64,000 nucleotides of DNA, taken from the NCBI RefSeq assembly GCF_003918875.1, contig NW_025767577.1, positions 310,001-374,000 on the forward strand, given 5' to 3'. Within the stretch, counting starts at the first letter, position 1. Each line of letters begins with the position of its first letter. The DNA comes from Haliotis rubra. Lineage: Eukaryota. The translations under genes were made by a program, and so were the position numbers. The notes below the pieces were generated by a model. That model had not been told where the DNA came from. It saw only the letters and a list, made by a program, of their open reading frames with translations, and did no database searches. This document shows positions 1,398 to 20,700 of the stretch, one piece after another.

Positions 1398-4300
1398 CTT
1401 TTTTTTTTTTTTTTTATTAGCACAGGGAAAGATGTTACATATCTGATACATAAGTACATATATATAACGAGATGGTACACTGCTACTATGTGAATACAAA
1501 TAAAGGAGTATATTTTCTGACTTTTCTCATAGCGATGAAGATCTTATCCACGGATGTGAAAGTAACATCCTCGGAAATGTACAGCATTTGCTTTACATAC
1601 TATATTGAAAAAATAGGGCAGATAGATGATAAGTACTAGAAGTGAAAGTGTGGAAATAGGGAGAGGAAGATAGGAGAGGGGGAAAGAGTAGATGAGAATG
1701 GAGGGAAAAAGACGGGGGAGGGGGCGTGTTGGTGGCTGCGTGTTTACGCTGGAAGTGTTGGCATCAATGTTGACCATTTATTTTTTAGTGTGGTATTGGC
1801 AGGGCCGTAAATATATTTTTCAATATTATAAATATGCTTGATATTTGTTATCAAACCATGGAAATACAAATTTGTTTCTTTATGTTTACAAGTATAAATA
1901 TACATGTTGAGAATGTTATACCAATGGTTTAACAGAAGGCTTTGATTGGGGTCTCCAAGTAAGATAATTGATTTCGATATTTTTAATTTCGTCTTGGTTG
2001 TTTCTTCAAACCATATTCGAATCTGTCTCATCAGATTTTGAGATTTCCTGCAATCATAGAAAAGATGTTCGAGTGTTTCTGGTTCCTCAGTGCAGAAAAA
2101 GCAGTGACTGCTGTCAGATATCCCTATATGCTGAAGGAAGGTTTGTGTTGTTAAAATGCGATGAAGAATTTTGTACTGAAAATTTCTTGTCTTATTATCA
2201 AGGCAACAGTAAGTGTTGTTGATAATAGAAAAACACTTTGACATAAAGTCTGTTGAGATTTGCATGTCTAGTTTGGATTCCCATTTATTTGTAATTTTGT
2301 CTAATTCGGCTCTAACCTTATCACATAATGTTTGGTAGATGAACTTACTGTCTCTTGACGATATTAACCGTTTCAGCATGTCACTTGTGCTTTCTTTATC
2401 AATTATATATGTAAGGTCATTTTTCAACTTGTTTGTAAATTCCTTTGGAAGAGCTTTTAGTAATTTGAAATTACGCAAATATGTTTCAGTAAGTTTATAC
2501 TTTTCTTTAAAGCGTGTTGAAATCAATTAGGACTCCTGCATCTGTGTAAAGGTCATACATGTTTTCCAGGCCACTGTCATGCCATTTAAGGAACTCTTTA
2601 AAATCATGTAGTTTTATAAAATTTAAAATGGGAAGTTTCACGAATTCATTGATGGTTGTTAGTTTTTCATTTGCTATATGGCTGTAGCTGAAAATGACAT
2701 TTTGCCAACATTTATTTTTCAATACTTTACTGTACTAATATTGTAATTGTTTTTTTGGGAAGTTGAAGATTGTTGTGTTTCCATATGGGCGAAGAATTTA
2801 ATTCACTAAAGATTGCCATGGGCCTTCCGATGATAAGAATCGTTTGGTCCAAATTATTGTCATATATTTATCAAACATTTCCACGTTCACCATTTTCGTC
2901 CACCGTTTTCGTATTCGTTTATAACCATTGTTCTCTTTATTTTATCCCATTTACCAGACCATACAAATTGATAGAACAGAGAGTTTAGTCTTTTGAAGGA
3001 TTCTTTGTCTGGACTTGGAAGAGAACTGAAGAGATGTGTGAATAGTGGTAATATTTGTGATTTAAGAATAGTGATTTTGCCTCTAAGAGTGAGACATCTC
3101 TTTGCCCATGAGAAAATAGCTTTTCTTGCTTTTTAAATTTTGTATAGTCAAGTTCATCGCAGTCATCGCAGTTAGATTGTGCATCAAAAATATTACCTAA
3201 AATCTTGAAAGATTCTTTCGACCACAGCATAGGGATATGTGGGCAGAGTTGTTCATTGCTATGTTTCTTATATCCTATCCATATTGCTCTAGTTTTATCA
3301 CAATATATTTTTAATCCTGAGCATTAAATAAAATCTCGACTAAAGATTTAAAAAAGCCGGGAGTATCGGTATTTGGACCGTAGATATTTGTAATAGAAAA
3401 TCGAATGTTTTCAACTGTCATATCAAGTATTATATATCGACCGTTTTCATCACTTTGATATCATACTCAAAATTATTTGTTATAAGTACCGCAACGCCCG
3501 AGCTATTACTTATTCCATGCGCGAAATAGCAACGATAGCCCCATTCTGCTGTCCATTCAAGTTCATTAATTTTACTGCTGTGAGTTTCTTGGAGAAAAGC
3601 AATTGAACATCGTTTAGATTTGAGGAAATTGAATATATCTCTTCGCTTGTTTGTATCTGATTGGAAGCCTCTAGCATTCATTAACGGAATAATAAAATTA
3701 TCCATTGTCATACATTGTTTCATTTATCTGCAGTTATCATGTGTGCGGGCTGAATTTGAGAAGTCACGCAGCACACAGACGCCCAGTAGATGTGTGAGAG
3801 AGAAAGAAAAGAAGGAAGCTGGGAGCAAATGAGAAATGAGATGAGATAAAAATATAATGGTTACCTGAAAGCCACCCAATTGCATCACATAAGGGGCCAA
3901 GAGGGAGAGTATACAAACGAAAGATAAGTATACATTATACAACTTAACATATGGATTAAGACTTAACATATATAAGTCACCATATTGCTATGTAGAACAG
4001 AAAAGCGTTTCAGCATAAATTAACAGAGAAGAAGAGTTGTGTTGTATTAATTAGGCAGTCATTCATGATAAAGGGAAGTAATTCGTAAGCAAGTGATTGG
4101 GGGATTTTATGGTGCTTCCTATCGCCTCAAAGTTGAGGTGACACTGAGTATTTTATGGGCAAAAAGTCACACAATCATTAAGTCTTAACACATATCCTTA
4201 ACACATCGTGTTTATCATTCAATAGGAAATATCCACACCCTTATTGGTGATCCATATGTGTCTCACAGTATGTGAAAGTCCTTTTTCACAAGGCAACTTT

Positions 4301-7972: not shown

Positions 7973-8498
7973 CTTTATAATGTAACGATAGGTACGATTA
8001 TAATATCATATATTGAGATGAAAGTATCTTCTAGATAGATGTTATTATCTTCCCGTAGATGAACATTCATTGTATCTTCTGGGACTGTGGCTCCAATACG
8101 CTTCCATGAATTGTATCTCGTATAGTTATATCAGTTTTATTCCCGTGACATCAATATGGCTTCATATCGACTGACTTCTTGACTACAAAAATGCGTGTTC
8201 AAGGAGAATGTTTCTGATGGTAAAATATCTCGTGACATGGGGTTCCAGTGCAAATGAGATTGGTGTGGCTTTGGGAACGCTCCATCACTACTATTCATCT
8301 TTGTCCAATTTCAGTTTTCTTAATCCAGTTTGAAAATATTAGAGACATGATATCCGACTGAAGTTAAAAATGGAAGAAAGTGAATAGGCTTTCTTTCTTA
8401 TGAATTACAAGTCAAGAGTTTACAATAAGAACTTGGAACAAGTTAAGAAAGGCCGTGTTTGCTACCAACATGAATAGTCCGGGAAGTATTCCTAATTT

Positions 8499-8773
8499 TT
8501 AGCTTACTGTGGTGTGTTTTTCCTTTGGCGCTTCTTCGTCTTGTAATTGAGCGTCGTGCATCTTTTGCCGTCTTGATAAGAAGTACTCACCGACCCTTCT
8601 ACGATAGCGCACTAGAACTATGATAACGATAATAATCACACCCAGGACAGACAATCCGACTGCGAGGCCCGTAGTGTTGTCTGGATCTCCAGGGGACACG
8701 CTGTCCACCGTTGTTGGTGTTGGTGTTGTAGATGTCTCTGGTGCAGTATTTCCAGGGCTGGAGTTGGGTGTTT
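8499..8773 (-). CDS. Receptor exon 10: S/T/P stalk, TM helix, cytoplasmic tail
   Basis: Acceptor ttgtttcag; TM GLAVGLSVLGVIIIVIIVLV followed by stop-transfer RYRRR. Confidence 0.85.
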
Positions 8774-11700
8774 CTGAAACAAGGGAGGGTAATTAATTTC
8801 TTCTATTGTAATGAAGTAACCCGTGCTTGCCGTAAGAGGCGAGTAACGGGATTGGGTGGTCAGGCTCGCGTAGATCGATGCTCATGCTGTTGATCACTGG
8901 TTTGTCTGGTCCAGACTCGGTTATTTACAGACCGCCGCCATATAGCTGGAATATTGCTGAGTGCGGCGTAAAACTAAACTCACTCACTCTCTTGTAATGA
9001 AAACATCTTGCTCATACCCATTAAAGAATCGCCATAAGTGAGTAAGTGACTGAGTGAGTGAGTGACTTTATAGTTTTACGCTGCTTTTAGCAATATTCCT
9101 GCAATATCACGACGGGGGACAACAGAAATGGGCTTCACATATTATACCCATGTGGGGAATCAAACCCGGGTCTTAGACGTGACGAGCAAACACTTTAACC
9201 ACTAGGCTACCTCACCGCACCGACTCACCACGAAGAGTGGAGAGCATTTGTGGAAATAGAAAACAAGATTCAATTTAATACAAGACATTCTTTTTTTTTG
9301 GTTCTGTGTACTGAGTTAAATCACATAGCCTATTGTACAGTTCCTGTAGCATACTTGGCATAACAGAGTGAGTAGCTCCGAAGTTGGCGTGTAGAAACAA
9401 TGAATATGGAAGAAAGAGGAAAGAATACAGACCAACACTATTTCCAGGAACCCACCCACTGTGGCTTCCACAAAATTGAAAGTGCGACTACTGGTAATTT
9501 AGATGTCATACTATTGAATAGAATGTGTAATCACCGGCAGTAGCTGTTGATTGGGATCTTTCTGTTAGAGTTGATGTTATGGTAGCTGCTGCCTCTGCGG
9601 AAAGACAAAAAGAAATACACGCATTAATTTCCAAAGTAGCATGTTAATATTATAGATAGTATTAGAATTTGTTTACAATACTGACATTTTGGAAATATGA
9701 GCACCATTTCCATATAGAAATGAACCTTATAGTCAGCACCTAAGTGATGAACATTTCTCTTTAATGTATTACTTTCAAATTGAAGTAAACAGCTGGCTTG
9801 CATTTCGTCTTCTGGTCTTGTGACCTTCGTTTTCCTATCAATAAGACAAAACATGTTCAACGGTCTTCGGTGTGACGAGCGATCACTTGAACCACAAAGA
9901 CATCCCACAACCAACGAGAAACGAAGATCAGTTTCAGGGTCTCGATCCACAAAGCATTCGTAGCGCTATGACATTCGTAAGCATAGTTAAATATAGAATT
10001 ACGACAGATCGTACGTAACGTTACGACGCTCTGTGGATCGGGACCCTGGCGTCATAAGTCAGTGCAGAAATATAAGCACGTGTATAAAAATTGTACGAAC
10101 CACTCAGTCTGTTAACACCATCGCAGGCAATCGTCGTTGTGCTGTTGCCACACACGAGGCTAACGCCGACGTCCCCAAAACTATCAGTTGTGACGAGGAA
10201 GTATGATTGTAAGGATAAATCCATGATATCGTCCATTGTCTGGTTCTGTTGCAGCGTCTGGGTAATGGTCCCAGTAGTCAGGAGGACTCCAGCCTGTTGA
10301 GGACAGTAGAAGCTCCTGATGTCAACTACCAGAGTCAGGTCAGTTCCAGGTTCCAGAGAAGCTGTGTTCTTATCACTCGTGATGGTACACAGAGGTGGAC
10401 CTGGTTATAATATATACAGTGTACATGTATCCCAGCAATGTTATGCGAACGTAATGAATCTCACACCAAATACATAACATTAACAGCAATAAAAGTAACA
10501 CCTTCAAATACCTTTTGACAAGGTATTTCCAGTAAGATCAGCATTTATTCAGTCATGCATACATGCATATATATTTTAGAAACAGGCGTGAAACTGTCGA
10601 CAAAGTAAATTCTACATTACAAGTCAGTGTGTAGATTATGTCGTAGTAGCATTGTGTATAGCTGCTTCGGATACGCCCCTTTCCAGAAAAAATATCTGGT
10701 ATGATAATGAATGTGATCATTGAAAAAAAACAAAGGCGTAAACTTCCGAAAAGATAAGACCTTGAGATTTGCCCCTCAATCCCTGGAGAGTTATCACAAA
10801 ACTAGAAATAGATATAATACAACTTGAAAAGAGAAGGTTTTTTATGAAACAAAAAAGAAATCTTATAGTGCATAGTCTAATACAAAAATATCTCAACTTA
10901 AAAGGTAGAAAGTTCCACGAATTATTCGTGGATTTTGCAAAGCTTTTTGATTCTGTGCAGCGGAATAAACTATGGGGACTTCTGCAATCGCACGGTCTTA
11001 GTGGTAAAATGAATAAAATGTTCAAGAGTACATGTATATACGAAAATGTTAAAGTGTGTGTAAGGAATAAGCATGAAGTATCTGTTCATTTTTTAGTGAA
11101 CTAGTGTTAGACAAGGCTGTATTTTCGGCTCTTTCATTTTTATGTTTTTCATTAATAAATTGGCAATGCTAATATGTGACACTTGTACGAACCCAACTAC
11201 ATCCAGATACAATACAACTATTTCTACTACTCCTGCAGACGATGTTGTATTATTCCATAGTACTGTTAGCGGTTTACGGAAACAAATCAGTATAAATTTT
11301 GCGTAAACAGAGACAAAACCAAAATTATCGACTTGGAAAGGTGGAAAAATTCTAAATTTGAAAAATGGTATTACAACTACTCCAAACTGCTCTATAAGTA
11401 TATTTCTCTGATAGCCTTTCCTGGTCCAAACACACAAAACAAGCGCCAGTACAAGCCTTGAAAATCGTAATCGGTGTTTGTAAAAATATGAGATCTTTTG
11501 GTGAAATATCCTTTAACTCATTCTTTAAAATATTCGATATGAGGATAAGTCCAATACTTCTATATGGCTCTGAAATATGGGGATTACAACAATATGACAG
11601 TATTAAAAGTTATCATTTATATGCACCCAAAAAGCGTATTGGTGTAAAACCGAACACATGTAATATGATGGTTTACGGAGAAATAGGTAGAGTCCCCTTG

Positions 11701-14700
11701 TTTATAGATTCATCCATTAAAGCCATAAAGAATTGGGTAAGATTACTGCATATGCCATGCCACAGGTTTCCGAAAAAATGTTATGATATGATGAAATTGT
11801 ATGACGAAAATGGGAAAAGAAATTGGGTGACTGATATTAGAGAGTTGTTGTGCAAAACAGGTTATGGTTATGTATGGTGTGATCACAATGTACAGTCCCA
11901 TGCAAATTTTATCATATCACTTACACCAAGAATGAAAGATATGTATTTCCAATCTTGGTCGGAATCATTACATCTATCAACAAAATGTTTATATTATAAT
12001 CATTGGAAATCGGATATACGTTTTGATGACTATTTAGCATCTCTCTCTCGTTTTCGTTGCTCTTCCCATTAATTATTTATTGAAACTGGCAGATATGCAG
12101 GTGTGCAAAGAGAAAACAGAATATGTCAATTATGTAATATGAATACTGTTGATATCTCCTTCTAATCTGCCCTGTTTATACGACTCTACGAACGATCTAC
12201 CTAAAGCCATACTATTATAAGCATCCAAGTGTAAGAACATTAATTTCACTATTAACAGATACTACCACATCAATATTACAGAATCTGGCAATGTACATCT
12301 ATTTCGTTATGAGTTTAAGGAAAAGGAATTGTTTTAGAAAAGAATTTGTAAATGACTTCTGACTACTCATGTAAACTTTAAATGTACTACAGGTCTATAG
12401 CCTCTTCATGTCCTGAATAAAGGTTGATTGACTATATTAACACGGAAAACCTGGACAAAGTTTTACCAATAGTTATGACAGTATATATTATTGAAAATTG
12501 GACATGTAAAATTAATTGACCACGTTTCACAATCTTCAAACGGCCAAGGGTCACATTGCGAACGAACGTGCGATACCGGTATCTTGTCTGTTGTCTGTCT
12601 AACACTACGCTAATCTAATTCACTGTGAACTTCACTCATCAACACCGATGTCTTCAATATGAAAATTATCATATAATCCCGTCAAGATAGAGTAGCTTAA
12701 GTGCGCAGTTGGCACCGTATCGTCAGTCGAGTTAGGCAATAGGATTTAGATATAGCAACTGAAGTTCACAACAACTTAATCGTCAGTGTATCAGTCAATG
12801 GGATTATCTATGATAATTGGAATAGGTATTAAACAGGGACGACACACAGTCACAAATCGTTCAGTGACTGCGCTGTAATAAATTCTTCGTCTATTTACTC
12901 AGGTTTTGTGTTGTGTTGTGTTGTGTTGATTGTGGGTTGGTATGGTCAGATCTCTTCCCAAGCGAACTGATTCCCCAAACTCTCGCGTTTTAATAACCCC
13001 ATTATACAAAATAACAGTTTATCATAATAATAAGACATAAGCATAGATAACAATACATCTATAAGAGATCAACATTCAAAACTAGGCCACCGGTAAAGGC
13101 ATCATAGAGACTAGGTCAAAATATTTAATTTACGGACAAAAATCAAAGTGGAGATATTAGGGTTAGTGATACTGACGACGGTGAACACACTGGAAAAGCA
13201 AATTGTATAATCCAAATTTGTTCTGTCTCAAAATGAGCAAGGAAATGTCACCGAAAATGAACATGAATACAATAAACTATGTTTATAACGAACACGTTTA
13301 TAACTCGTGGTTAATACAAACAATTTTTTCGTCTTTGCTACTGGGCGGTGATTAAGCGTTGGCTCGTCACGCCGAAGACCCGGGTTCGAATCCCCACATG
13401 GGCACAATGAGTGAAGCCCATTTCTGGTGTCCCCCCGCCGTGATGTTGCTGGACTGTTGCTAAAAGCGGCGTAAAACAAAACTAAGTCAGTCAGTCAGTC
13501 AGTTAGTCTTTGCTACTTCTTGTTTCTCTTAGTCGAAATGGGTTTAACCAACTATGGTTGTAACGAAATTAAGTCAGCGGTTCCTCGGGGTTCGTTACAA
13601 CCGTAGTTTACTATTGCTGACGACTTGAATTTCAACTTACTTTTCTGTAGCCTCTTCACCCCATCACAAGTCAGAGGACGCCGTCCGTCACATATAAAGT
13701 CCAGCGTTACATCACCTAATCGTGTGATGTCTACACTGAAGTTTGTGTTAGCGGTGAAGTCTGTTACAACACTGACGTTGTGTCTCATCCCCAACTGTCC
13801 AGTCACATCACCAGTAGTGAGATCAAAGCCAGTCTCCACAGAACAGTAGTAGCCTGTGATGTCCACAGTCAGAGTCAGCTGTGTTCCAGGTTCCAGGGAG
13901 GCGGGGTCCTCGTCACTGCTGATGTTACAGTGTGGAACCTCTGATAGCAGGAAAACAAAATATAAACAATGTGATGACTTGGTATTTCACTCAAACATTT
14001 ACACAGTTGAAAAAGTTACTTAAACATCCACTACCTTTTGAATGCATATGATACGAGTATTACCATCATGTGTTAGAAATGAAACACTGTGCCCGTCCCA
14101 GTGACGACACATGTCAGCAGATAAGCATCTACCTATTTATCTATCGAAAGAGGATGTATTGTTTAATTCTGAAGGCACGAATGATTGTAGCAATAGGTAA
14201 TATAGTAGCATGGCCATATCATTTCTGGGATTCCTGATTGCAGGACAATATGGAGAAACAGAAGTAAAAACCACATGAAGACTTTCTCAATGTATATGAT
14301 ACCAGTATTACCATTGTGTGTTAGGAATGCTAAATGAAAACTGCTCGTCAAAGTGATGATATATGTTGTATATTCTGACGGCATGGATGATTGTCCCGAT
14401 AGTCAATATGGTAACTGTGGGATATCTGATAGCAGGACAATATGGACAAGATATTCAAAAACCCTGACGAAGGGCAAGAAGTATCCCAGAAACGTTGTGA
14501 AAAAACAAATCAAGAAGTTGTTATCCATAAGATTTTTCTTGTATTACTACACCAACTTCTAAATGCCTTGATTGTTAAATTGACAAATGACGCGTTCGTT
14601 TATACGTTATTTTGTTCCATCATATTCTGAATGTACTTTGAAAGTTGTAGACATTTTATAGTGCCCTACAATGTATGCATTTTGAAAAATCTTTTTCAGT

Positions 14701-17700
14701 GTTTCAGGATGTAGACAGTTTTATTCTATTGTTCCTATTGTCTGACCTCTAAAACAGAATTTGGTGAAAACTGCTACAATTATTTAGTTACTGCTACATT
14801 TATATACATGTATATCCAAAATTATCACATATCAAGTTATGCAATATAATTAACTTGTTAACGTCACATTAAATTTATCAATTTGCTTTGAACAAATGCC
14901 CATAATACTTGTTTTCATTCATTGTCGAATACAGTGATCAAAATTGACTGTTATTTTGTTTTCGGCCAAAGATTTTCATATCATGTATAAGTGAACCGCC
15001 ACCAAATTATGTTTGCAAATTTGGCAACACTTTTTAGTCAGTCTATGACAGTGTGTCAGACTTTAGAAAATCAGAAACAATGTAGAGACAACAACCAATC
15101 AGATAACCACGGTCTGGTCTGATGGTGGGGAAAGACAACCAATCAGATAGCCACGGTCTGGTCTGATGTTTGGAGAAGACAACCAATCAGATAGCCACGG
15201 TCTGGTCTGATGTTTGGAGAAGACAACCAATCAGATAGCCACGGTCTGGTCTGATAGCCACGGTCTGGTCTGATGGTGGGAGAAGAAAACCAATCAGATA
15301 GCCACGGTCTGGTCTGATGGTGGGGGAAGACAACAGGTCTGATAGCCACGGTCTGGTCTGATGGTGGGAGAAGACAACCAATCAGATAGCCACGGTCTGG
15401 TCTGATGGTGGGATAAGACAACCAATCAGATAGCCACGGTCTGATCTGATGGTGGGGGAAGACAACCAATCAGATAGCCACGGTCTGGTCTGATGATGGG
15501 GGAAGACAACCAATCAGATAGCCACGGTCTGGTCTGATGGTGGGGGAAGACAACCAATCAGATAGCCACGGTCTGGTCTGATTCTGGGGGAAGACAACCA
15601 ATCAGATAGCCACGGTCTGGTCTGATGGTGGGGGAAGACAACCAATCAGATAGCCACGGTCTGGTCTGATGGTGGGGGAAGACAACCAATCAGATAGCCA
15701 CGGTCTGGTCTGATGGTGGGGGAAGACAACCAATCAGATAGCCACGGTCTGGTCTGATGGTGGGGGAAGACAACCAATCAGATAGCCACGGTCTGGCCTG
15801 ATGGTGGGAGAAGACAACCAATCAGATAGCCACGGTCTGGTCTGATTCTGGGGGAAGACAACCAATCAGATAGCCACGGTCAGGCCTGATGGTGGGAGAA
15901 GACAACCAATCAGATAGCCACGGTCTGGTCTGATTCTGGGGGAAGACAACCAATCAGATAGCCACGGTCTGGTCTGATGGTGGAGGAAGACAACCAATCA
16001 GATAGCCACGGTCTGGCCTGATGGTGGGGGAAGACAACCAATCAGATAGCCACGGTCTGGTCTGATGGTGGGAGAAGACAACCAATCAGATAGCCACGGT
16101 CTGGCCTGATGGTGGGTGAAGACATTCAACACTGAAAACATTATTATGCTCTATGTATAACAAGTTCTTTATATATTGTGATGCGACGTTTGGATATAGA
16201 TTCGTATACCGTTGTCAAGCAGTGTGTTCTTACTTAATAGTGTTCACGAATGGTGTTTCAAAGTAACAGGACAGTGGGTCCTGTAAGCTTCAGATGTTTG
16301 TCTGACCCATAGAATAAAATTAAACACACATTTTATAAACAGCAAACAAGTGTCACATGTCACATATAACAACTTCAGTCAAAGTCATTGGGAAATATAC
16401 AGTCAGACACTGGGTTGTAGACTTCTATCAGACCTTTGGCAAATCTGCCAGAGGGTCAGACGCTATTCGTGAACACTGTGTTAGATGTACATGAGTCGGT
16501 TCTGTGTTATGTTACTTTACACTTGCTTGACAACGGTATACGAATCTATACCGAACGTCGCATCATAATATAACAAGAAGCTGTTGTTTATCAAGTAGTG
16601 TACCTTTTCTTATCATTCACCAACTTCTAAAATACCAATTAAACAGATTACTCAACACTCACGAACTGCCGTCAGTTGACACACTTCGACAGGAGTGGCA
16701 TCCACTACAGTCGCATCCGCGATCTTCCATGTGCCAGCATCTGCTGCTCTATTATTCTCAATAGTAAGCGTGGAGTTTGCGGTGTTCATCGTTGCTCTGT
16801 ATCCTGCAGTAGGGCTGCAGCTGGGGTTGCAGGTGACGACGTAGCGACCATCACTTGGTCGGACCCACATGAAGCCTGTATAGTTGCTTCTGTCACCTAC
16901 AATGGTGAACTCTTTTCCAAGCTGACCAGCACCGCCCGGACACGTGGAATCTACCTGTGGGGGATCTGCAATGAAAGGCAGTGTGTTGCTGTTAATGTAT
17001 GTACACTACCCGTTCTGCCTTAGTGGGGAAGTAGTCTATTGTACCGCAGTAAAATGCTTGATAGCAGTGTTAGCATCAACATCTAAAAGTCCCATCTATT
17101 CCAAATGAGACGTCGTCGATGAATAAACCTTTTTTATCAAAATCATAACAGCTTCTAATAAAATGCCGTGTATAGACCTGAAGTTATTGCACCAAAGTAA
17201 TGATCANNNNNNNNNNNNNNNNNNNNNNNNNNNNNNNNNNNNNNNNNNNNNNNNNNNNNNNNNNNNNNNNNNNNNNNNNNNNNNNNNNNNNNNNNNNNNN
17301 NNNNNNNNNNNNNNNNNNNNNNNNNNNNNNNNNNNNNNNNNNNNNNNNNNNNNNNNNNNNACTGGGATATGAAACACCATGTCAGCGAGCCTGATCACCC
17401 GATCCCGTTAGTCGCCTCTTACTACAAACATGAGTTGCTGAACACCAACTGTAACCTGGACCATCACGGGTCTGTTTAATTGATTGTATTACGGGAATTG
17501 ACTGATTACAGGTAATTATTTTCCGATATCTCTCATATAATACCCACAGTAGCTACACCTGATGCAGACTAGATTATTGGCATAGACAGAGCAGGGTATT
17601 GCTTCAAAACACAATCAAACAAGGGCTGAAACCGGACAAGGGGTGACTACTTGTCGCAGTTTACAAACAAGGCTGATGCCTAGATCGTTACAACTTAGCC

Positions 17701-20700
17701 AGCGGTAAGCCTGCTGTTTGCGCAGTGACGACAGCTTAACAAGCCGATGACCTGTTTGAAGCAAACTGTACTTGTTGGACCATTATCAGATATCGTACGA
17801 ATATTCGCTACTACAACCAAGAACCGCACCCGAGGCGGCTCCACTCAGGCTCCGCGCTCACCTCGGCGACCCCAGTACACGTTGTGACTCCTACTCGTTG
17901 CCAACTACCTTGAAGTGCTTCATGTCCATTACAAAATAAACAAAGTCATTCCCAGTGCTTCGGAATTGGGGAACATTATGTCCAATATTCCCAGGTATGG
18001 CTGCGTTTCAGTTATTGTATTCAACTATCGAGGAATCATTGTGTAGTTGGATTGGTCTTCGGAGAGATTCCCGGAATTGGGTGCATCTTCACACGTGAAT
18101 TACAATAACTCCGCCTTTTATTTAAATGGTGAATGCTAGTATGTGTTAGCTTGTTATGTTTATACTTGACAACGATACTATACAGAAACAATAAACTAAT
18201 CGTAACAGAAATAGCGGATAATCTGTACCTCGTGAATTCGGGGTTGCAAGTCTTGACCTTTTAGTCAGTTAAGTTAAGGGAATACCTGTACTTGGAAAAG
18301 GCGTTGTTGTTGTTGCTGTTGTTGTTGGTGGTGTTGTTGTTGTTGGTGTTGTTGTTGTAGTTGTTGTTGCAAACACGATTGTCTCTGTTGTTTCCGTTGA
18401 TGGCGTCACTGTTGGGAAAATATCAAATTAATGTCCTCCATATCTGGTAAAGACAGTTTGCGACTAATACTACTCCACTGTTATGATAGATCATAGGAAA
18501 ACGATTCAAAGTAGAAATAAAATGAATATGACAAGAAATGAGAACAGCTTTGTAATGTCTCCTAATGTCTTTGTTGTGCAATTATTTTATTAGTGTTATT
18601 TTATTTCAGTTTTGTGGATGAGTGTGAAGACATCTACCTTCATCTTCTGTTACCACGATCACATCTACAACCACCACTCACTGCGTACCATCTGACACTA
18701 AAATATGGATTCTCGTGTTTACATACCTGTCGTTGTCCAAGGTATCGTGGAGTCATTCACTGGTAAGAGAGATGTTGATAATTAAGCCAAATATCGTATT
18801 AACTGATCATGCAGGTTACATGCAGGTTATATTTACTGTCAGACAGAGGAAAAGATACACTTGAAAGTTGGGTTTGAGGTGAGGTGAAATGGAGTTTACT
18901 TGAGACTGTGTATGACGACGTCCATGCATGTGTATGTGTATGTGTATGTGTGGCTGCTTGTACTAGCCCAGACTGAAGATGGTTTTATAGTGCTAGCCCA
19001 CTGAGATACCATGCCGCAGTGAAGCATGAATACCCCACTCAGACACATTATACTGACTCCGAGCCGACCAGTCCTTGTTGTACCCATTAATGCCGAGCGC
19101 CAGGCAGGGACCAACAAGTACCATATTTTAGCGTCTTTTGGTATGACGCGGCCGGGGATCGAACTCGCGACCTTCCGCTCTCCGGGCGGACGCTCTAACC
19201 ACTACACCACGGAGGCGGTCTCACATTGATCTAACGAAAACATACACATGTAAACTATTCATATGCTAGCATGCTTGTACTAACAACAGACTGCCACGGT
19301 TTGATGTACCTCAGTAATGTTCATACATAAATATAGTGGCAGTGTTGAATTATGTCATTAGGTTCTTGAATACCCACAAAGTGGAATTAGAGTATTGAAA
19401 GGTTTTTAAGTTCTGCTCCGGAAACGAGCACTACCACCAATTTCAATCAAAGTAAAACTTGTCGCCACGGAACAGCAAAAAATATTTTAGTCAGATATCC
19501 CAAACTACCAAAAAGAACCAGGGGCCCTATTCTCGAAACGTTCGTAGCCCTAAGAATTTTTAACTTTGACCGTAGCCAATGTCTTAGGAATGGGCTTAAG
19601 AAGTTCGTAGGGCTACGTTTCGAGAATAGCTAGCCTGTTCACCACCAGACCTATCTATGTGCCAAGTTTGGTGACGAGATTTGTTATGGTTTTTATGTTC
19701 TGCTCCGGAAAAGACGAATTTGCACGGACGGACGGAGTCCAAAATGCTTCTGCCTTATCCCTTCTGTGTGTTCCACTTTATCCTTTACTTACTGCCAGTA
19801 ACTACCCTAGCCTATATATACCCTGGTATATATGCTCTGCTTTATCCTTTACTCCCTCCTAGTTGAGGGGGTTATAAAAGTCTGCAACCAAAGCTGCTTT
19901 GTTCGATGTTCAACATCGAAGCAGAGTGTAATCTCTTTGGAGATGTTATTTACAGAAGGGCAACACTTATGACATGCCACGGATCGGACGTTTATTTGAT
20001 ATTTCTGTTCAACACTATAACCAGTGCAACAGCTCGGGCACTTCCTGGGTGGAGACCAACGAGTGACAGAACAGTATGTAACAAGTTATAGATATATAAA
20101 CCCCAAACTGTTACGCATGGGCATTCATGCATACTCAACAACTATCTGATTTACGATAATGGATGTATGTATACGAAGTGCAATCTAGGAGATGATTTTA
20201 TTGTTTAGCTAATTTTCGGAATATGTCTATGTTTACAAACCAGTAGATGTTGGTGTATCAGATGTCGTCGAAGACGTATCTGCAAGAATCAAGAAAAATA
20301 ACACTCATCACCCATGTCATATAATACTATACCAACAATGTACATATACATTTCCTTTGTTAAATACTGTTCTATGCACGTCTTCTCATGGGCCTGGCGT
20401 ATGTGTCCTGCTTTATCCTTTACTTACTACACAAGTTATGCTTAGCCTGGTCTGTGTGTCCTGCTTTATCCTTTACTTACTACACGAGTTATGCTTAGCC
20501 TCGTCTGTGTGTTCTACTTTATCCTTGACTCACTACACAAGTTATGCTTAGCCTCGTCTGTGTGTCCTGCTTTATCCTTGACTCACTACACAAGTTATGC
20601 TAAGCCAGGTCTGTGTGTCCTGCTTTATCCTTTACTCACTACACAAGTTATGCTTAGCCTCGTCTGTGTGTTCTGCTTTATCGTTTACTTAGTCGCAATA

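Follow-up and report, generated by a model that had tools for sequence, protein, structure and literature searches.

Paralogous 300-bp exons of Haliotis rubra encode a four-cysteine domain with a predicted divergent immunoglobulin-like fold

When surface receptors of the immunoglobulin (Ig) type have expanded in a single lineage, a role in immunity or in the recognition of cells and gametes is usually involved, and the rapid evolution of recognition proteins has classically been studied in abalone. The Ig fold can dispense with the disulfide between strands B and F, as in CD2 domain 1 and CD58. The closest described systems to the locus analyzed here are the C2/I2-type Ig domains (VCAM-1 D2, ICAM-2 D2, PirB/LILR and LAIR-1), which consist of seven strands and approximately 95-100 residues, are extracellular and membrane-proximal to an N-terminal binding domain, and are encoded as one domain per phase-1 exon. 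The same features are found in a domain with four cysteines (four-Cys domain) encoded by two paralogous exons, A and B, on the minus strand of a 64,000-nucleotide stretch of the Haliotis rubra genome (contig NW_025767577.1, positions 310,001 to 374,000), hereafter called the window. Each exon very probably encodes one extracellular, divergent Ig-like module of approximately 100 residues, as part of a type I membrane glycoprotein from a family found only in Haliotis.

Inspection of the splice borders confirmed that the two exons are exactly 300 bp long, as claimed in the preliminary description of the window (Table 1). Reading of the sequence placed the acceptor AG of exon B at 13942-13941 and its donor GTAAGT from 13640, and the acceptor AG of exon A at 10402-10401 and its donor GTTCGT from 10100. 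Both exons begin with the second and third bases of a codon and close with the first base of another, which gives the phase 1-1. A second in-phase donor (GTGGTT) is located 3 bp upstream in exon A and would shorten this exon to 297 bp. The 300-bp version was preferred because paralogs show GTAAG at the site and because annotated relatives retain the Ser of "...KLS". Both frames are open, and the two products share 41% of 97 aligned residues (BLASTP expectation value, E, 5e-24), with saturated synonymous divergence (dS) between the exons. The shared motif given in the preliminary description was borne out by both products (PxCxIxSD, SLEPGTxLTLxVDI, (Y/F)YC, TTG, GDV, C and CDGVxRL), with the Cys at residues 4, 32, 83 and 91/92.

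The two exons are part of a predicted gene, which was searched exon by exon. The order on the minus strand, with an N-terminal Ig exon followed by exon B, exon A and an exon for the stalk, transmembrane helix and tail, matches the architecture of the family. All junction phases are compatible, with split codons in ...TAV-Q-VPHC..., ...LQK-S-PPLC... and ...NRLS-E-TPNSS, and the last exon ends at a TAA stop (8501-8499) if it is read through. The N-terminal Ig exon of the window had no significant Pfam match of its own. In the subfamily to which the window gene belongs, the N-terminal Ig domain has lost its canonical Cys in strands B and F and retains four other Cys; Y-T-I and A-G-T-W-K-I replace the L-T-C and A-G-x-W-x-C of other subfamilies. 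The tail resembles those of the family proteins P0005 and P0076.

The structure of the exon products was modeled with AlphaFold2 using family alignments of 35 and 47 sequences. The mean predicted local distance difference test score (pLDDT) was 93.6 for both exons, and the predicted template modeling scores were 0.81 and 0.83. Both models are ordered, with no sign of a disordered structure, and all-beta, with seven strands at residues 3-8, 20-30, 35-42, 45-54, 59-68, 75-83 and 86-93, which were named A, B, C, C', E, F and G after their counterparts in Ig domains. Strand F is preceded by a short helical turn (residues 71-73) in both models. When 48,161 chains were searched exhaustively with VIA-align, the highest score (Z 8.4) was obtained for the C-terminal barrel of FXIII, followed by PirB/LILR (Z 8.1), and a Z of 7.9 for VCAM-1 D2, ICAM-2 D2, CHIR-AB1 and an arrestin-fold N-lobe; one PKD domain was placed inside the structural background (Z 7.1). 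When the top 1000 Foldseek matches of exon A were re-ranked, VCAM-1 D2 came first (Z 8.4, 92 aligned residues, root-mean-square deviation (rmsd) 3.0, 18% identity), ahead of LAIR-1 (Z 8.0) and PECAM-1, and SIRP and V domains were also present in the list. The Ig neighbors with Z 7.9-8.4 cover residues 1-99 of the model. A shape search of the ESM Atlas yielded a template modeling score (TM) of 0.68 to a chordate I-set cluster, beside bacterial and archaeal sandwich domains. The models support an Ig-like seven-strand sandwich that would be nearest to the C2/I-type Ig domains, without a particular family. The divergent Ig-like fold suggested in the preliminary description is supported by this result, its neighbors in the models being VCAM-1 D2, PirB/LILR, LAIR-1 and ICAM-2 D2.

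The sequence of the domain was examined for hallmarks of known families. When both exons, 35 family members and full-length relatives were scanned against Pfam, nothing significant emerged for the four-Cys domain, and neither exon was covered by a confident hit to a standard domain. The best Ig-type matches among the 35 members had E values of 0.014-0.035, in one or two members each, and none was below 0.01. Fibronectin III, PKD, HYR, CUB and other standard extracellular domains of approximately 100 residues had no Pfam match at E<=10 in the two exons and the 35 members. A sequence profile search of PDB gave nothing below E 0.2, and a feature search of the ESM Atlas was blank.

The family consensus reads pP.C.I.Sd.dt..L..g..ltLtVdi..YYCS....f.L.tG ... 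G.V.l.F.C......l.C.Gv..L. In the consensus of 154 copies, the Cys occupy columns 4, 32, 83 and 92, strand B (l-t-L-t-V-d-i) is without Cys and no Trp is conserved. The absence of the strand-C Trp and of a strict D-x-G-x-Y-x-C motif, both pointed out in the preliminary description, thus holds for the family, but a trace of the E-F corner survives: the helical turn between strands E and F and the G-D-V-x-L-x-F-x-C that comes after it look like what is left of the D-x-G-x-Y-x-C corner, in which case an aliphatic residue would occupy the usual position of the F-strand Cys. Two other resemblances were given little or no weight. The summed score of family protein P0001 to the Pfam family ig (E 6.6e-10) has its best stretch in the E-F region but no single significant stretch, and was taken as a hint only. 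The stretch D-I-x-x-Y-Y-C ... L-T-x-G (profile positions 26-55; in exon B approximately 13779-13868, minus strand) is similar to the F-G motif D-I-A-x-Y-Y-C ... F-G-x-G-T of antibody light chains, but with an E value of 50 the similarity is probably due to chance.

The four Cys columns were scored in 154 non-redundant copies of the domain. All four Cys are retained in 139 copies. The first and fourth Cys (C1 and C4) are jointly lost in nine copies from two separate lineages, namely a clade with the motif P-x-V-N-I ... I-T-P-E-G and protein P0062, and the second and third (C2 and C3) in three near-identical copies from a single lineage. C1 alone is missing from another three copies, which represent one gene-model truncation, one shifted Cys and one real substitution. 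None of the 154 copies lacks C1 and C2, C1 and C3, C2 and C4 or C3 and C4. Because the losses pair as C1 with C4 or C2 with C3, and never in mixed pairs, they support the C1-C4 and C2-C3 disulfides that were proposed in the preliminary description, with C1+C4 lost at least twice and C2+C3 once. From this pattern, we infer that C1 at the start of strand A pairs with C4 in strand G, and C2 in the B-C turn with C3 at the end of strand F. The two peripheral disulfides would stabilize the fold, and aliphatic residues would fill the core sites that usually hold the B-F disulfide.

The same exon design was observed across the family. In 56 of 60 distinct genomic copies, in-phase AG...GT borders delimit each domain as a single phase 1-1 exon, most often of 300 bp (29 of the 56 copies; range 270-312 bp). 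With one such exon per module, duplication and loss therefore keep the reading frame, consistent with the one to six four-Cys domains found per protein. Both the single-exon rule and the variable domain number agree with the symmetric exon duplication put forward for the window. The usual order of the proteins is a bona fide Ig domain at the N-terminus, one or two (up to six) four-Cys domains, and then a mucin-like Ser/Thr/Pro stalk, a transmembrane segment and a tail after the last four-Cys domain. In 60 proteins, the first four-Cys domain begins at approximately residue 105-180, behind a segment of approximately 100 residues. The N-terminal segments of a 36-member sample matched the Pfam families Ig_3 (19 segments, best E 5e-6), ig (13), I-set (11) and V-set (7).

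Variations of this architecture were noted in individual proteins. The RefSeq models P0001 (1022 residues) and P0002 (765 residues) contain five to six four-Cys domains, and in P0001 three N-terminal Ig domains are interleaved with the four-Cys domains. These two may represent true long arrays or fusions of neighboring tandem genes, and some long arrays may be fused models. The distant members P0015, P0033, P0054 and P0069 have tails with repeated motifs of the type of immunoreceptor tyrosine-based inhibitory or switch motifs (ITIM and ITSM), namely S-x-Y-A-T-V, L-Y-A-T-V, G-Y-S-T-V and Y-A-S-V. The tail in the subfamily of the window gene is short and basic only.

The size and taxonomic range of the family were estimated from a profile of the exon pair. 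In the H. rubra genome (1.378 Gb, 2855 contigs), 115 matches were obtained at E<=0.01, mostly full-length and open, with tandem pairs or clusters on approximately 40 contigs; exons A and B each scored E ~1e-52. An exhaustive search with the same profile against 1.84 billion representative proteins returned only 70 matches at E<=1e-3. Approximately 50 named hits were looked up and came from H. rubra, H. rufescens, H. cracherodii and H. asinina, except for hits in Acipenser. The Acipenser hits (P0058 and P0063, E ~1e-6 summed over repeated Ig-C-like stretches) were weak, were gone when a 35-sequence profile was used and were rejected as members; one Acipenser record is flagged UNVERIFIED_CONTAM. 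Three matches from Logan and ENA assemblies (P0046, P0053 and P0055) carry neither name nor organism. The Haliotis proteins are labelled "uncharacterized protein" or "mucin-like", 16 of them are listed without a precomputed Pfam domain, and no paper describing a four-Cys family was found in full-text literature searches.

The domain is already present in RefSeq, unnamed, and is a variant of the Ig-like fold and no new fold. Judged by these searches, it is uncurated and, as detected, restricted to the genus Haliotis, and in that sense the term new domain is valid. The domain is not defined by the two exons, as the family has at least 115 exon copies.

The relationships within the family were read from a maximum-likelihood tree that comprised 92 domains. 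In this tree, exon B is placed among the "first" domains (D1), both those of paralogs and that of an H. asinina protein, with a support of 97 in the Shimodaira-Hasegawa-like approximate likelihood ratio test (SH-aLRT). Exon A joins the "second" domains (D2; SH-aLRT 95), where its terminal branch is long (0.55). Since both groups contain H. asinina proteins, the duplication into D1 and D2 is older than the species splits and the paralogous genes. Other subfamilies possess D1/D2 pairs of their own. Exon B is 76-79% and exon A 54-56% identical to domains in proteins from H. rubra and H. asinina. An extra D2/D1 copy is located on the same contig and strand, approximately 95 kb beyond the window (G000:C2687:415237-415533 and 417812-418105; L003 and L004). 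Its products are 87% and 79% identical to those of exons A and B, and the pair is, on the sequence comparison, a recent segmental duplicate of the window gene.

The ratio of non-synonymous to synonymous substitution rates (dN/dS) among recent paralogs was 0.43-0.83. For exon A and the paralog approximately 95 kb away, dN/dS was 2.1, based on 13 non-synonymous and 2 synonymous changes, which are too few for a test; the value for exon B and its paralog was 0.70. N-glycosylation sequons are present at a mean of 3.9 per four-Cys domain. The most economical reading is that the four-Cys modules are glycosylated, membrane-proximal structural parts of fast-evolving recognition receptors. Most likely, they would be rigid and glycan-shielded and hold the N-terminal Ig domain outward, as C2-type domains do in VCAM, ICAM and LILR receptors. 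Together with that Ig domain, they would form fast-evolving receptors for immune or cell and gamete recognition. A more far-reaching proposal, which we make tentatively and consider doubtful, is that the Ig fold was reinvented in the module within this one genus, with two surface staples in place of the buried B-F disulfide, and that the module is the building block of a clustered, fast-diversifying family with more than 50 surface receptors in abalone, some with ITIM-like YA(T/S)V tails, that acts in non-self or in gamete and cell recognition.

Several results weigh against the interpretation as an Ig-like module of recognition receptors. The four-Cys domain has no sequence or profile tie to any Ig family, and an hhalign comparison to the N-terminal Ig domain of its own family gave a probability of 0.5% over 10 columns. 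Foldseek found no match in PDB at E<=1e-3, the best being antibody V domains and beta2-microglobulin (E 1e-2, TM <=0.55). According to the calibration of the alignment tool, a Z of approximately 8 is the best that models lacking a clear relative typically reach, and non-Ig sandwiches tie with the Ig domains at this level. The disulfide pairing relies on three co-loss events, and the function is deduced from architecture alone. Finally, the long branch of exon A and its 13:2 changes may reflect relaxed constraint instead of adaptation.

The structural ties raise the question of whether the module is a beta-sandwich of non-Ig lineage, such as an E-set domain (for example, the transglutaminase C-terminal barrel) or an arrestin-like, CARDB/PKD-like or fibronectin-III-like domain, which resembles Ig domains through the common Greek key and without descent from the Ig superfamily (IgSF). 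FXIII/transglutaminase barrels (Z 8.4 and 7.9), arrestin N-lobes (Z 7.9-8.0), SoxZ and dextranase N-domains equal the Ig scores, CARDB and bacterial sandwich clusters were retrieved in the Atlas search with TM values of 0.66-0.74, and a sequence tie to Ig families, as noted, was not found. However, the re-ranked list of exon A is headed by eukaryotic cell-surface Ig domains, and the setting is that of a classic IgSF protein: the module is extracellular and right behind a bona fide Ig domain, each domain has its own phase 1-1 exon, and the protein is a type I membrane protein. The helical turn between strands E and F, together with the subsequent F strand, which contains Gly and has Cys at its end, is Ig-like, and the six domains of P0001 sum to the Pfam ig score given above, albeit with no individually significant stretch. 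We therefore regard a non-Ig lineage as unlikely and the Ig-like module as the preferred reading. It is more improbable still that the window gene is a decaying, unexpressed paralog, with exons that are intact merely from recent duplication and without present function: the dN/dS values of both exons, the long branch and weak donor of exon A, the repeat insertions in the intron and the lack of any identical protein among those retrieved (best 76-79%) would fit such a decay, but four exons are open with canonical, phase-compatible splice sites, the four Cys and the core motif are retained in both domain exons, the dN/dS counts are too small to separate relaxation from positive selection, and the database is clustered at 50-90% identity, so a missing identical entry tells little.

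The intron between the domain exons contains plus-strand open reading frames (ORFs) at 10766-12069, which had no Pfam match. Judged by eye, they look like a decayed reverse-transcriptase fragment with the motif F-V-D-F-A-K-L-F-D-S-V. Elsewhere in the window, the minus-strand ORFs at 1747-2526 and 3433-3723 match zf-RVT (E 8e-9) and Exo_endo_phos (E 3e-5), and a non-long terminal repeat (non-LTR) retrotransposon is therefore indicated in the region 1747-3723. A repeat with copies throughout the window is found in the intron at approximately 13330-13480. It has a tRNA-like GGTTCGA box that resembles a T-arm (GGTTCGA.TCC...GGGCACAATG; core at 13382-13409) and occurs in 10 copies in the window compared to 0 expected (Table 1). 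The repeat is probably a family of tRNA-derived short interspersed nuclear elements; ARAGORN called no tRNA at positions 8000-18000 of the window.

Table 1. Features of the predicted four-Cys receptor gene and associated repeats (positions in the window)
Feature	Position	Strand	Remarks
N-terminal IgSF domain exon, same gene	16663-16965	minus	303 bp, phase 1-1, donor GTGAGT
Exon B, D1-type four-Cys Ig-like domain (first, membrane-distal; predicted)	13641-13940	minus	300 bp, phase 1-1
Intron between domain exons	10401-13640	minus	3240 bp, decayed repeat insertions
Exon A, D2-type four-Cys Ig-like domain (second, membrane-proximal; predicted)	10101-10400	minus	300 bp, phase 1-1
Exon for Ser/Thr/Pro-rich stalk, transmembrane helix and short basic tail	8499-8773	minus	acceptor AG 8775-8774
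Other nine copies of the tRNA-like repeat	446, 30827, 31723, 40133, 45153, 46343, 50169, 51704, 53317		

With these results, a domain that occurs in dozens of "uncharacterized" or "mucin-like" abalone proteins and lacks a Pfam model receives a name, a fold and a disulfide map that can be tested. They also bring to light a large, clustered and genus-restricted family of IgSF receptors in a mollusc of commercial and ecological importance. Among known systems, the transglutaminase/FXIII C-terminal barrel and the arrestin N-lobe score as well as the Ig domains (Z 8.4 and 7.9; 91 aligned residues, rmsd 2.8-2.9). These sandwiches are intracellular or attached to enzymes and without disulfides, and have no likeness to the four-Cys domain in exon, architecture or sequence; the resemblance is at the general level of a sandwich. 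The Pfam Ig clan (PF00047 ig, PF13927 Ig_3, PF07679 I-set and PF05790 C2-set) matches the adjoining N-terminal domain, and the four-Cys domain retains the E-F turn and the G-x-V-x-L-x-F-x-C motif. Unlike members of the clan, none of the 35 copies scored below E 0.01, and the domain needs a Pfam model of its own.

The C2/I2-type Ig domains align to the four-Cys models with Z 7.9-8.4 over 86-94 residues (rmsd 2.8-3.5). The four-Cys domain differs from them by a low identity (12-18%) with no profile match, by having neither the B-F disulfide nor the strand-C Trp, and by two putative peripheral disulfides (A-G, and one between the B-C turn and the end of F), for which the co-loss of Cys argues. 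To our knowledge, this pair of disulfides is not carried by CD2 domain 1 or CD58. The four-Cys family would be a clean case of an Ig fold that tolerates the loss of its core disulfide, with phase-1 exons that allow the number of domains to vary. If the tentative role in non-self or in gamete and cell recognition is true, it would be the molluscan counterpart of the multigene receptor families of the LILR/KIR type.

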